DNA from: Octopus sinensis
Taxonomy: Eukaryota
NCBI RefSeq assembly: GCF_006345805.1
Contig: NC_043005.1
Span: forward strand, 49,662,001 to 49,726,000
Reading direction: 5' to 3'
Length of the DNA: 64,000 bases
Both the position numbers and the translations under genes were made by a program. Positions 39,501 to 45,500 of the stretch are shown here, piece after piece. Every line of letters begins with the position of its first letter. The first letter of the stretch is position 1. The notes under the pieces are model-generated. The model was not told the origin of the DNA. It saw nothing but the letters and a program-made list of their open reading frames with translations, and did no database searches.

Positions 39501-42500
39501 GCCCCTGTAACTTAACAGTTCAGCAAAAGAGTCCAATAGAAAAAGTACTAGGTTTACAAAGAGTAAGTCCTGGGGTTGATTTCTTTGACTAAATGGTGAT
39601 GCTCCAGCATGGCTGTAGTCAAATGACTGACACAAATGAAAGTATGAAAGAAAAATTAATTACCTGTTTTTCACAAACTAAATCTGTATGCCAGGAAAAA
39701 TAGTAAGTGCAATTTTTAGATTCAGCTAGATACACAGGAGCACCTATTCCTTTTGAGGGGTTGCACACAAAGTTGATGATTGTGTTTCGTTCAAACTTGC
39801 CTCCATGACATTTATCACCACCAGAATAGTTCAGGAAAATGACGCCTTCTTTGAATTGAAGGTTGCTGTTAGCTTTTCCACAATTAAAAGATTTATTGGT
39901 GTTCGTGTTGGTCTGGCAGGAGCCTTCATTAAGGAGAAAAAAAGGGAGAAGAATGTAAGAGAATATAAAATTTAACAATACACTTTCTGTGGTTCAAGTA
40001 AAGGCACCATCACTGATTGTATGTTAAGAGGAGGAAAATTAACCCAAATATGGCAAAAAAAAAAAAAAATAAAATAAAATAAAGAAATCAAACTTACTGG
40101 ATTCTTTTGAACATTGGCTATTTGCCACTGCACCACAAATGTTAAGTTGGAATGAATGTTCTTTTTGATCACTTATGGTGTATCCCTTAGATTTCTTCAG
40201 TTGAGACAGGTCAAAGGAAACTCCTAAAATAAACAAACAAATGTGAATAAATGAAATAACAACAGGTCTGGAAACAATGATTAAAAAAACTGAAGCAACC
40301 AAATCTGTTCTAACAAGCAGCATTGATATGATTGGAATTCCGTGAAACTGGTGAGGAACATCCACTCATTAATAGATGATGATATAGGATGAATTTTATC
40401 AGAGATAGTCTGTTGCACACCAGCCATATCTCTCTCTCATATGTACACACACATACCAGATTCTGGATTTAGTAGCATGGCAAATAGAAACTGCTCAAAA
40501 GTTTAGCTCCAGATTAATGCAACCAGTTGATTAATTAAGCACATTTAAGCAATGACTATCCCCTTTTCCATTGTACAGATATAGTACCTAGGTGGTTTTA
40601 TTGTTTTTTTTTTTATGCTAGTAAGTTATGGGTTGAGGTGGATTTGGTTGGTACTTTCAACAGATCAAATCTCTACATTCACATGAAGATTTTAATACTG
40701 CAATCTGGTAAACAACTTGTTGAATTTTAGATTGTTGCCATTGTTTAAAACACCAGACACTTGAAGACAATGTGCAAGACTCTAGATAGAAGTGCCAATT
40801 ATCCCTCAAAATACTCAACCATCTTTACAAAACCAAAAATGAAAAGAGAGAGAGAACAAACTTTTTATTATGGCTTAGCCATCTTTTTTCTCAGAAACAA
40901 GGCAAAGTTGAAACTGACTCAGTATCGAACAGACCAATGTCTCTTTTCAGTTCAATTGCAAGGTTTTTTAAATAGTGTTTTCTATCCTCAATCAATGCCC
41001 ATCTAGTTCCCACAAAACTGCCAGCATAGATTCAGGTCTGAGCACTACAGCTTCACCACTTTTGTTCCTCTCAATATTCATTACAGCTGGATTTAACCAG
41101 AACCACCAATCACCAGTCAGTTACTATGGGATTAAAGTTAATGAAAGCTTTTGATATGATTACCAGTCACAGTTTGTTGGAAGATCTTCAAAATAGCACT
41201 CTTTCACAAGGTATTATAAGATGATCAGCAATGTATTCAAAAAGTAGATTAGCAGAAACTAAACCCCAAAACAGAAATCTAAAAGTAGAATTGGGAGACA
41301 TAGAATTCCCCTGGGAAGCAGTATATCTCACCCACTTTTTAATTTTTATGGCTCCAAAGTAGTGATAAATAGCAATGAGCAGCTCAAACTCACAAATTAT
41401 GCAAACAGTTTCAGTTTTTGGTTCAGACACTGCTGCCCATTTGGCCACCACTAAACTCAATAAATACATGCCCAACAAAATTGGTTTTTAAGCAAGCAGA
41501 GAAGCAAAACACTCAGCACCTTAACTGGCTGTGACTTTGTTCCTCCTCAAACTACCCAGTCCCAAATCCAAGTTTCTGGCCATATACTTTTTGTAGAGCA
41601 AATACCCAAGCAACAAGAAATTCTTAGCATTCAGAAATGCCTTTTTATTCACATTGTTTTGAACTGATCACATATTATGTTGTTATCTTTAAGATTTCAA
41701 TGACATGATTGTTTATTTTTATAATGACAAAGTAGGGTAGGTGTAAGAGGCTGGATCTGACTGGTGTGAACATAGAATTTTCAACTAGAATTTTCAGGCT
41801 GGTCGAAATGCTAAAAAGTTAATGGCGTCCACTCTGTTGCAATCATTCAGGTTAAGTCTCTGGTTTGAAGATACTGTCCTCCCTCCCACACACTTAAAAG
41901 CCTTGAGCAAGCGATCTTTAATTTTTACTGCTTTCAGTTATTAGACTATGGTTATGCAGGGACACCACCTTGAAGAATTTTTAGTCAAACAAATCAACTC
42001 CAATACCTTTTTCTTCTTTTGTTTTTAAGCCAGGTACTTATTCTTTCAGTCTCTTTCATTAAACCACTAAGTTAGAGACGTAAATACACCAACACTGGTT
42101 GTCAAACTGTTGCAGGGGACACACAAAGTCACAACACATACACACGCGCACACACTTGATGGACTTCTTCCAGTTTCTGTCTATGAAATCCACTCACGAG
42201 GCTTTGGCCAGCTTGAGGTTATAGTGGAAGACACTTACCCAAGGTGCCATGCAGTGGGACTGCATCTGAAACCATGTGGTTGGGAAGTAAGTTTCTTACC
42301 ACAGAGTCATGCATGCATGTAAAATAAAGCTAAAAATATAAACTAAACATAATGCTAAAAATTTAAGTCGATTGCTGAGATTTTGACTTGGAGCCCAGAA
42401 AAGATGCTGAATACCTTTGATATGCATATTCTCTTACTGTTTCTGCCTAACTGAAAGGTTCTATGAAGTCATTCAAATAATGAGAAATAGCAACCAAATA

Positions 42501-45500
42501 TTTCTCATATCACATTTTCTTTTAAAGAAGAGCATATAAGACAATGATGTAGTTCTAGCCATATTAAACAAGAAAAGAAACAAAAGATCATGGCAAGAAT
42601 ACCTTTGACCACAAGGGTTTTAAAAAATACAACTCACTACATGCGTGCATTAAATAAAAATGATTTACCTGTAGACTCATCAGTTACACTACAGGTGTCA
42701 TTATGAGATGGGATCTGGTTCAAAGGACAAGCTTCTCGTGCAACCCACAAAAAGTGATGTTCACATTTACTTTCTATATAGTAATACTCTTTGGGGCTTG
42801 AATCCTGAATTCAGAAAGAAAGGAAAATATTAAAGGCATTTCAAAACTGTAAATATTTTTTTATCCTTTTACTGGTTTCAGTGATTGGGTGACAACCAAA
42901 CTGAGGCACCGTTTTCGAAAGTATTTAATTAATCATTTAGACCATACCAGCACTTATTTCAGTCCGACTGAATGAATAAATTACATGTTTAAAAAGTCAC
43001 CATACAACACTGAAAGCATATGGCCCAGTAGTTAGAGCATCAGACTGACTCGAGTAGGATGAAAGGTAAAGTAGATCTTGGTAAGATTTGAAATTAGAGC
43101 TCAGAAGGCAAAAACAAATACTGCAAAGCATCGTATCCAACAGCCTAAAGGTTGTCATATCACCAACAGATAATTGTGTGTGTATGTGTTTGCATGGGTG
43201 TGCACAGATGTGTGACAACCACTACATATGTGAAGAGTATGGTTTATTGCTGTTGCAAACTCCTGCCAATAGAGTTCCTGCCACTATATGTTCAGTTGCC
43301 CTCAACAACCAAAACACTACTTCAACACCATTCTAAGAACAATATTTCTAGACATTCATCTCAAAATATTAAGAGTAAGTACAGATGCATAACTAATAAC
43401 AGCAGCAGCATCAATAACCTCATCAACTCCAAATGCTATGTATGGATGTATTTATTCCCACCTGAAACCATAGGTAGCCTTGTTAACCCACAAATAAATA
43501 AATATACATGCACGTCTTCTTTTTGTTTCAGACAAAATAAATTCAGATTTATAAATTAGATAATGGCTTTAGACCAAAATACAATCATAACCCACCACAA
43601 AGGAGGTGAAAGTAATACAGCTTTAGCTAAAAAGCTTAAAATTAACCAAACAATAATCTGGAAAATTGCCATGAAATTTCAAGAGACTGGTTCCATCACT
43701 GATCAACCTGAACGTAATTAAAAACGGAGAGTGTGGACCCCCCAGATTATCAAAAGTACGAGAGAAAACATATGGTGAAATCCTTGTCATTCTGTCAGAA
43801 AACTGGCTACCACAGCAAAAATAAGCTGAAGATCAATGTACTGTGTGCTGAAGGAGGATCTCAGGACCCACCTCTACAAGATGATCTGCCTTCATAAGCT
43901 CACACAAGTTTATAAGACCATGAGACTGGGGAGAGGTCATCTTATCCTGCGTCAGATTGCTGAAGGCATGCTGCCCAACCTGGTGATCACTGATAAAAAG
44001 AAATTTGATATCAAACAGACAATAAACCACCAGAATGACTAATTTTGGAATGTATCTGGCTCCATCGAGGGTAGATTTGTAAATCAACATCAAAATCCAC
44101 AGTCCTTTATCGTTTGGGTGGCTGAGGCAGTCACAGGAAGGTCTCATCTTGTTTTTGTGTCCTTGGGTGTTAAAATTAACACCCAGCAATACATTAGTGA
44201 TGCTCTGGAAGCTGAACTGCTTCCATGGGTGAATGAGCACTTCCAAGGTGCACTTTGGAGCCTCCAACAGTACTTGGCACCATCCAACAGCTCCAAACAG
44301 ACAACACTGGATTCAAAAAAACGTTGTCGTTCATAGGAAAAGATGTGTGGCCCACAGGAAGCCCGGATCTCAACCCGTTGGGTTTTTCTGTTTCATCTAT
44401 TTTGTAGACAAGGATCTTGAGCATTCCTCATGCTTCGCTTGATGCTCTGAAGAAAAAACTCTGAAGGAAAAATGGACTTCAATTCCATAAGAACAGCTGC
44501 ATGCCACATGGGAAGTATTCACACCTAGACTTAAGACAGTGAGCTAAAACAGAAGTGGTCATATTGAATAAATGTGGTAGTGTCATAATTGTGTCTCCTT
44601 TACCATTGCATTGCAATGCTTTGGCAAAATTGAAAAAAGTTGAAACAACCTGTATATATATTCTTTGTGGGTTAACAAGGCAAACAATAGTTTCATGTTA
44701 GGGGATTTTCACAACTGTTCGAATATGTCACATGAACGTGTTGGTACTTGTCTCTATTTTAGATGGAAATCACATGAAATCATTGGTAGCTTTGTTGACC
44801 CACAAATAAAGAATATCTATCCACCAACACTTGAGGACTCATTTTCCCTTTTCAACATTAGTGTGTGTGTGTGTGTGTGTGTATGTATGTAACTAACTAC
44901 AGGTGACAACAGGCATATCAGTCCATGATGGAGCTTCTATATGATTGTTAATGATCATTTAATGCCTATTTTTCCATGCTTGCATGGGTCAAATGGAATT
45001 TGTTGAGACAAATTTTTCCTGTCACCAACTCTTGCCTGTTTCCAAGCAATGTAATATTTGCCATGACCAGACAGGTTTTCCACAGAAGATTGGAAACAAT
45101 CAACACCACTTGTATGACAGTGATGCTTGTATACAGTCATCACATGATGACAAGACATGAGGACAAGCAAACACAAACACACACACTGCCTGTGTGTGCA
45201 CAGGATGGGCTTATTTCATTTTCCATTTACCAAATCCACTCACAGGGCTCTGGTTGGCCTGAGACTGTAGCAAAAGACACTTGCCCTTAGTGTCATACAA
45301 TGGGGCTGCACCCAAGATAATATGCCAGGAAAGTAAGCCTCTCCATGACACAGCCCCCCACACACATAAGCTAAAACTAGCAGCCAAATCTCCCTTAAAT
45401 TACATTGTTTTGTAAAGGCAAAACAGAAGAGATAATGTAGTCCTAGCTACGCAATGACCAACAGACGGATGACATGATGGGTATGACTAGAATGTCTATT

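Follow-up and report, generated by a model that had tools for sequence, protein, structure and literature searches.

The vertebrate CI-MPR/IGF2R is a lysosomal sorting receptor that binds sugar through four of its repeats (3, 5, 9, and 15), with Gln, Arg, Glu, and Tyr (Q, R, E, and Y) as the residues essential for this binding (PMC7481795). Binding of mannose-6-phosphate (M6P) is treated as the ancestral function and has been found in molluscs and starfish (PMC11541866), while binding of IGF2 is viewed as a mammalian acquisition made through changes in the CD loop (PMC6684648, PMC12796670, PMC6779898). Repeat 11 is the primary IGF2 site, and repeats 8 and 6 are also among the domains that touch IGF2 in the bovine cryo-EM structure (PMC7015683); the CD loop is the IGF2-contact loop, and an I1572A substitution cuts IGF2 binding 100-fold (PMC6684648). 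It is a classic problem, with ties to genomic imprinting and the theory of parental conflict, how one repeat of such a receptor turned into a growth-factor trap; earlier work traced how IGF2 binding was gained within vertebrates as the CD loop changed between monotremes and therians. Here, we analyzed a 64,000-nucleotide stretch of Octopus sinensis DNA (contig NC_043005.1, hereafter the window), along the whole of which one large gene, that of CI-MPR, runs on the minus strand, and we focused on MRH repeat 11 of the encoded receptor. Our results make it fairly probable that this repeat has a full P-type-lectin pocket of the repeat-9 type, with predicted carbohydrate recognition, and that it represents an ancestral bilaterian site, which was lost before vertebrates and later reused for IGF2.

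Among the known systems, vertebrate repeat 9, the high-affinity M6P site, matches octopus repeat 11 column for column in Q, H, R, E, and Y and shares its Glu-to-Tyr spacing (+6), its four-disulfide Cys pattern, and its MRH beta-barrel (TMq 0.86 to 6Z30); it differs in being a paralogue of about 29% identity with a His-to-Arg loop that is one residue shorter. Mammalian IGF2R repeat 11 (1E6F, 1GP0, 2V5P) occupies the same position (11 of 15) between the same flanking repeats and shares its terminal motifs with the octopus domain (DxC.VT...TG..FDLS.L, GKAN, and FSWHT.L.CE.Q); however, the human domain has F, P, Y, D, and L where that of the octopus has Q, H, R, E, and Y, its CD loop (CFGQTRIS) is shorter and hydrophobic whereas that of the octopus is longer and polar, and it binds IGF2 with the help of a fibronectin type II insert in repeat 13, which the octopus receptor lacks. 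Vertebrate repeat 5, which is of low affinity and prefers phosphodiesters, gave the top single-domain score (97 bits) and the top structural match and also has Q, R, E, and Y, but it carries Asn in the column of the loop-C His, lacks the pocket Cys pair, and is not the positional orthologue. Repeat 11 of other invertebrates (Asterias, Glandiceps, Ylistrum/Pecten, Nephila, Limulus, and Strigamia; predicted RefSeq/UniProt proteins) has the same QHREY residues, the same +6 His-to-Arg spacing, and 43-48% identity to the octopus repeat, which differs in having an N-C-T sequon and one further Cys close to the pocket.

Octopus repeat 11 is encoded by three GT-AG exons (42804-42669, 40223-40098, and 39923-39664), whose outer splice sites are the two coordinates, 42804 and 39664, between which an original prediction made from the DNA letters had located it. 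The first 34 codons of the 42804-42669 exon belong to repeat 10, and repeat 11 starts at codon 42702-42700 (NDTC...). All of the peptide strings quoted in that prediction for repeat 11 were found in the minus-strand translation, with SSCQT spanning a phase-1 junction (A/GC), and the strings quoted for comparison from repeat 9 were found in exons 59310-59082 and 55393-55022. The exons on which the comparison relies are as follows.

42669-42804, minus strand: end of repeat 10 (residues 1469-1502) and start of repeat 11; AG/GT splice sites, continuous frame, and 100% identity to XP_036361842.1.
40098-40223, minus strand: middle exon of repeat 11 (VSFDLSQL...NSQCSKES, residues 1514-1556), phase 1 at both ends; exon model, with the same exon in a second, cephalopod-like locus (L001, see below).
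39664-39923, minus strand: last exon of repeat 11 (residues 1556-1642), with all five signature residues and the Cys pair C1594/C1627; translation, and alignment to human repeats 3, 5, and 9 and to the columns of a hidden Markov model (HMM).
59082-59310, minus strand: first exon of repeat 9, containing AACQT (the Gln of the repeat-9 site); exon model.
55022-55393, minus strand: end of repeat 9 and start of repeat 10; exon model and full-protein tblastn.

The five signature residues are Q1559 (codon 39915-39913), H1595 (39807-39805), R1601 (39789-39787), E1623 (39723-39721), and Y1629 (39705-39703). Every sequence feature of P-type lectin membership that we tested was present, namely Q1559, R1601, E1623, Y1629, the loop-C His, and the Cys pair. 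In the HMMER alignment with human repeat 9, the relevant segments pair as sscQ/sscQ, cHggkfeR/cHk-vyqR, and laEsknctY/lkEtsdcsY, and the octopus Q, H, R, E, and Y also fall on the essential columns of human repeats 3 and 5 and on the HMM columns. The five residues had been predicted to stand at the same positions as in repeat 9 of the same protein; they do occupy the same alignment columns, but the His-to-Arg spacing is +6 (HGGKFER) rather than the +5 of repeat 9 (HKKFNR), and +6 is common to all repeat-11 orthologues. That mammalian repeat 11 lacks the signature was confirmed, as the same columns hold F (acFgqtr), P, Y, D, and L in human; those of the caecilian repeat 11 hold V, P, Y, D, and F.

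Like repeats 3 and 9, repeat 11 has a Cys directly before the His (C1594-H1595) and another two residues before the Tyr (C1627), whereas repeat 5 of both octopus and vertebrates has N in the His column and no Cys before T-Y. By this Cys pair and the His, the predicted site of octopus repeat 11 is of the repeat-9 type. From mutagenesis of repeat 9, its loop-C His is reported to contact the phosphate; the corresponding residue of repeat 3 is Ser. Eight Cys residues are invariant in 35 repeat-11 orthologues. Full signatures were also found in octopus repeats 3 (QSREY), 5 (QNREY), 8 (QHREY), and 9 (QHREY), which together with repeat 11 gives five; the HMM alignment puts no Arg in the repeat-15 column in any species, possibly through misalignment, and repeat 15 was kept out of the counts. 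In the pocket that we propose, made up of the CD-loop Gln, the His adjoining the loop-C Cys, the Arg, the Glu, and the Tyr, all residues but the His would hold the mannose ring, the His would be turned toward the phosphate like its counterpart in repeat 9, and the Cys pair would staple the two pocket loops. The likeliest ligands would be M6P-bearing N-glycans of lysosomal enzymes, and the five full-signature sites (3, 5, 8, 9, and 11) would raise the avidity for multiply phosphorylated lysosomal enzymes. The gene model, repeat number, orthology, signature residues, conservation, and fold come from the data, and from these we infer glycan binding by octopus repeat 11, along with its ligand type and affinity.

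We then considered whether the domain is indeed repeat 11. Segmentation with an MRH profile HMM built here identified it as the 11th of the 15 MRH domains of XP_036361842.1 (residues 1503-1642), a protein that also has a transmembrane segment and an acidic-dileucine tail ending in ...DDSDEDMIL; against Pfam PF00878 (CIMR repeat), the domain scored 90.8 bits (cutoff 22.5). The number 11 in the original prediction was thus correct for the full protein, although the window, whose coverage begins only with the last part of repeat 8, does not by itself allow the count. The gene model is colinear with bovine CI-MPR 1213-1906 (358.7 bits) and 1958-2134 (100.8 bits), which correspond to repeats 9 to 14, and the best out-of-register alignment to the bovine receptor reached 172 bits. 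The fibronectin type II insert could not serve as a landmark for the numbering, being absent from the octopus receptor. When the individual repeats of eight species (octopus, hemichordate, starfish, scallop, spider, unionid clam, caecilian, and tick) were compared all against all by BLAST, the top match of octopus repeat 11 was repeat 11 in all seven other species, and repeat 11 of six of the seven, including the caecilian, matched octopus repeat 11 best in return, as did that of the tick; the caecilian and octopus repeats are reciprocal best hits at 99 bits. The tick repeat 11 is fast-evolving, and repeat 11 of other species matched tick repeats 5 or 9 best.

Consistent with these matches, a neighbour-joining tree of 150 repeats (10 species x 15) placed nine of the ten repeat-11 sequences in a pure clade, in which the octopus repeat nests with those of starfish, hemichordate, spider, and scallop; strict monophyly of the ten fails, the tick repeat lying just outside the clade. 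Octopus grouped with scallop, starfish, and hemichordate repeat 11 in 140 of 200 bootstrap replicates. The domain therefore did not fall among the paralogues of repeats 3, 5, or 9, the outcome that had been named as the one to refute the numbering. On the other hand, bootstrap support for octopus and caecilian in one pure repeat-11 clade is moderate (103/200), and in phmmer searches against mammalian receptors the domain scored higher with repeat 5 (97 bits in human and 91.5 in bovine) and with human repeat 3 (83.6 bits) than with repeat 11 (64-68 bits), both of which weigh against our assignment. We read the higher repeat-5 score as reflecting the strong divergence of mammalian repeat 11; among the caecilian repeats, the top match is repeat 11. 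A repeat-5 paralogue, as suggested by the phmmer score, was ruled out by position, colinearity, reciprocal best hits, and tree. The same four lines of evidence (11th place in the full protein, colinearity with bovine repeats 9-14, reciprocal best hits with repeat 11 of the caecilian and of six invertebrates, and a place inside the repeat-11 clade) leave it very improbable that the domain is a repeat-5 or repeat-9 paralogue that merely seems to be the 11th, in which case the comparison with the IGF2 repeat would be meaningless. Position and phylogeny mark the octopus domain as the true orthologue of vertebrate repeat 11, the IGF2-binding repeat of mammals.

To follow the signature across animals, we used the last repeat-11 exon (39921-39664) as query in an exhaustive HMMER scan, which yielded 687 relatives, including about 40 near-full-length receptors, with names for 30. 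Repeat 11 carries QHREY in the hemichordate Glandiceps, the starfish Asterias, and the crinoid Antedon; in the scallops Ylistrum/Pecten and the clam Mya; in the spider Nephila, the scorpion Centruroides, the horseshoe crab cluster of Limulus, and the sea spider Nymphon; and in the centipede Strigamia. It does so as well in L001, where repeat 11 has the same three-exon layout at 50-67% identity per exon. L001 (5839-16822 of ENA ERZ21867824, contig ctg119654l, a metagenome accession) shares the exon layout of the octopus across repeats 10-12 and is the orthologous CI-MPR locus of another mollusc, probably a cephalopod. Gastropods have lost part of the signature (Batillaria, QHRSY; Elysia, QRRSY; Bulinus, QNRRY), and it is largely lost in several other protostomes (unionid clam, LPRDY; nemertean, LSRDS; tick, APRVY; crayfish, SSRDY; barnacle, KGYDI) and in chordates (Ciona, LSHDH; a whale-shark entry, ISHDH; caecilian, VPYDF; human, FPYDL). 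Thus, the alignment of repeat 11 across phyla that the original prediction had proposed shows QHREY in Ambulacraria, Mollusca, Chelicerata, and Myriapoda and its loss in tunicate and vertebrates, and the extra glycan site suggested for the octopus receptor stands insofar as repeat 11 has the full signature, but is not special to the octopus, being ancestral and found in repeat 8 as well. In the literature searched, which did not include the 2010 review by Nadimpalli and Amancha, no paper describes a lectin signature for repeat 11 of invertebrates.

Across 61 representatives of orthologue clusters, all five signature residues were kept in 34, four in seven, and three or fewer in 20. The 34 representatives across phyla with all five go beyond chance, and such a bimodal retention would be expected of a functional binding unit under selection. 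The repeats that lost the signature are also more diverged domain-wide than close relatives that kept it (scallop 143 bits vs. unionid 100, and spider 120 vs. tick 82); all-or-little retention followed by relaxation after loss would fit a functional binding site under selection. On this distribution, QHREY in repeat 11 is the ancestral bilaterian state and not a peculiarity of the octopus, and by the same alignment the signature is also lost independently in several protostome lineages. Ciona and shark repeat 11 share three derived states (His, Asp, and His), which suggests that the signature was lost once, on the stem that tunicates and vertebrates share, where the pocket residues would have been replaced. 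A homologue search (with the domain and the 35-sequence alignment) gave only three short fragments and no amphioxus, lamprey, or fish sequences; with no amphioxus among the relatives, the loss can be placed no more narrowly than between Ambulacraria and the group of tunicates and vertebrates.

Repeat 8 has a similar history. The octopus repeat 8 has a full QHREY, common to repeat 8 of hemichordate, starfish, unionid, and nemertean, and the corresponding residues are VKYQF in the caecilian and YGYDF in Ciona. Outside animals, ichthyosporean and choanoflagellate proteins (P0004, P0007, P0021, and P0046) contain 14-17 MRH repeats, many of them with Q-x-R-E-Y, and a 15-repeat protein (P0008) has Q-x-R-E-Y in 12 of its 15 repeats. 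This suggests that most repeats may have been lectin-competent before animals and that sites were then lost step by step.

The position of the signature bears on the origin of the IGF2 site. The column of the essential Gln corresponds to human F1567, a CD-loop residue that precedes I1572, the key residue of IGF2 contact, by five positions (counted on the printed alignment). Neither the hydrophobic CD loop of the mammalian type (F1567...I1572) nor the hydrophobic pocket lining was found in octopus, which has Gln in the F1567 column and a longer polar loop. A fibronectin type II pattern was found neither in the six frames of the window nor in the full octopus protein, and the repeat-13 exons 26221-26014 and 24455-24379 join directly in phase, leaving bovine 1906-1958 without an octopus counterpart. 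The only long relatives with the pattern are the caecilian receptor and one choanoflagellate protein, which has it at a different position. The suggestion that the IGF2 pocket evolved from a former lectin site gains support both from the ancestral signature of invertebrate repeat 11, lost in tunicate and vertebrates, and from the match of the Gln column to F1567 next to I1572; a sugar-binding site was probably the origin of the IGF2 pocket, and in mammals the emptied pocket would later have been lined with hydrophobic residues to become the IGF2 site. More tentatively, and with somewhat less than an even chance of being right, we propose that no fewer than five repeats (3, 5, 8, 9, and 11) worked as lectins in the receptor of the bilaterian ancestor, that the pockets of repeats 8 and 11 were lost a single time, on the lineage leading to tunicates and vertebrates, and that the IGF2 site is a reused dead lectin pocket. 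Of the repeats that lost the signature, 8 and 11 are the two in contact with IGF2 in the receptor of mammals.

The structure of octopus repeat 11 was predicted by AlphaFold with the 35-sequence orthologue alignment (a single-sequence run, pLDDT 35.8, was discarded), and the resulting model (AF2) has a pLDDT of 96.5 and a pTM of 0.90; its predicted fold is the standard MRH beta-barrel. In Foldseek, the matches to repeats 5, 11, and 9 of the human receptor were of similar quality (TMq 0.83-0.89; CD-MPR, 0.70), the top match being a human structure containing repeat 5, and since this search does not separate repeats 5, 9, and 11, it says nothing on orthology. Vertebrate repeat 11 superposes on the octopus model at TM 0.83-0.87. 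Because vertebrate repeat 11 folds alike without the five signature residues, these are dispensable for the fold.

Several observations weigh against a repeat-9-type M6P site in octopus repeat 11. Its His-Arg loop, as noted above, is one residue longer than that of repeat 9; an N-C-T glycosylation sequon (N1626 at 39712-39714) lies three residues before the pocket Tyr; and the CD loop carries an extra, ninth and unpaired Cys, Cys1570 (codon about 39882-39880, by hand count). The sequon and Cys1570 are absent from L001 and from other phyla, and either could hinder the predicted site. Moreover, some MRH domains with Q-R-E-Y (OS-9, XTP3-B, and glucosidase II beta) have mannose glycans without phosphate as their ligands, so that the phosphate specificity of octopus repeat 11 is putative. 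The repeat might instead be a working lectin that is not a high-affinity M6P-monoester site and prefers either the Man-P-GlcNAc diester, like vertebrate repeats 5 and 15, or unphosphorylated high-mannose glycans, like OS-9. Such a preference would agree with the best single-domain mammalian matches, which are to repeat 5 of human and bovine, with the repeat-5-containing structure that headed the Foldseek results, and with the fact that Q-R-E-Y alone specifies mannose and not phosphate. However, repeat 11 keeps the pocket-loop Cys pair C1594/C1627 and has a His straight after the loop-C Cys, as repeat 9 does, and both are missing from repeat 5; we therefore regard a non-monoester preference as unlikely, though it is the most serious of the alternatives.

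Considerably less probable is that the signature is a vestige, its residues kept for structural or inter-domain reasons in a pocket that binds nothing. The possible N-glycan at N1626 and the free Cys beside the octopus pocket would allow it; against it stand the invariance of the five residues in four or more phyla over a span exceeding 500 million years, the tendency for most to be lost where one is lost, the fold of vertebrate repeat 11, which persists without them, and L001, which has neither sequon nor free Cys yet keeps QHREY. Least probable of all, to the point of being nearly negligible, is a role of octopus repeat 11 as the binding site of an insulin-like peptide, comparable to that of its mammalian counterpart for IGF2. 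Domain orthology alone speaks for this; the CD loop of the octopus is polar with Gln at human F1567, the repeat-13 insert that strengthens mammalian IGF2 binding is absent, and IGF2 binding has been described as mammal-restricted (PMC12796670, PMC6779898). We therefore favor a carbohydrate-binding pocket of the repeat-9 type as the probable state of octopus repeat 11.

The gene model behind these results was assembled by searching six-frame fragments of the window with phmmer for MRH-like coding pieces and then choosing frame-keeping GT-AG junctions. The resulting model of 17 exons and 910 residues corresponds to residues 1171-2080 of Octopus sinensis XP_036361842.1 (2340 residues, 15 MRH domains), with 100% identity over the 910 residues; the CI-MPR gene itself is thus already annotated and not new. 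The O. vulgaris protein has a repeat 11 identical to that of O. sinensis. A tblastn search with the full protein added four repeat-15 exons within the window, and the transmembrane segment and tail are encoded beyond base 1. The remaining features of the gene are as follows.

507-63121, minus strand: part of the CI-MPR gene in the window, from the end of repeat 8 through repeat 15; exon model, tblastn, and protein match.
63041-63121, minus strand: last exon of repeat 8, which holds the Glu and Tyr of the repeat-8 signature; exon model.
52051-51985, 46091-45947, 37548-37336, 34372-34226, 29259-29086, and 26221-26014, minus strand: further CI-MPR exons; exon model.
24455-24379, 23734-23580, 19637-19495, 9940-9811, and 8592-8524, minus strand: further CI-MPR exons; exon model.
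About 8153-8067, about 5500-5310, about 1950-1850, and 592-507, minus strand: four repeat-15 exons; full-protein tblastn, boundaries approximate.

By base composition, the 64,000 nucleotides are AT-rich, and the window is rich in introns, several of which hold other elements. A long interspersed nuclear element (LINE)-type retrotransposon lies at 14891-18852 on the plus strand, antisense to CI-MPR, within the repeat-14 intron; its open reading frames (ORFs) encode an endonuclease domain (16087-17385; PF03372/PF14529) and a reverse transcriptase (17605-18852; PF00078), and a third ORF (14891-16030) matched no family. The raised GC content at 14-18 kb is due to this element, and an apparent GC dip to 0.155 at 32-34 kb is due to a 100-N assembly gap (32670-32769) within the repeat-12 intron. 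A second reverse-transcriptase fragment (47697-48749, plus strand; PF00078, 45 bits), with a weak PHD-finger match, was found within the repeat-10 intron. A peptide-like motif (including VVGAFYVPP) recurs in minus-strand intron translations near 58.3, 53.7, 49.5, 25.7, 12.8, and 7.9 kb and elsewhere, which points to a dispersed short repeat family. TA/CA microsatellites are common in the window.

The octopus data would add a step that precedes the changes traced within vertebrates: repeat 11 appears to have been lectin-like in the bilaterian ancestor and its pocket to have been vacated before vertebrates arose, and by its sequence it is still lectin-like in octopus, echinoderms, hemichordates, bivalves, and chelicerates. 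As a caution, invertebrate receptors need not have the vertebrate set of sugar-binding repeats (3, 5, 9, and 15). The prediction is that invertebrate receptors are more multivalent for M6P glycans than the vertebrate receptor, and compact M6P-binding modules of the repeat-9 type may serve as M6P probes. A concrete ancestral state is now available for reconstruction experiments, and if the IGF2 site is indeed a reused lectin pocket, the change could be mapped residue for residue (Gln to F1567, etc.), with living invertebrates keeping the pre-IGF2 state.

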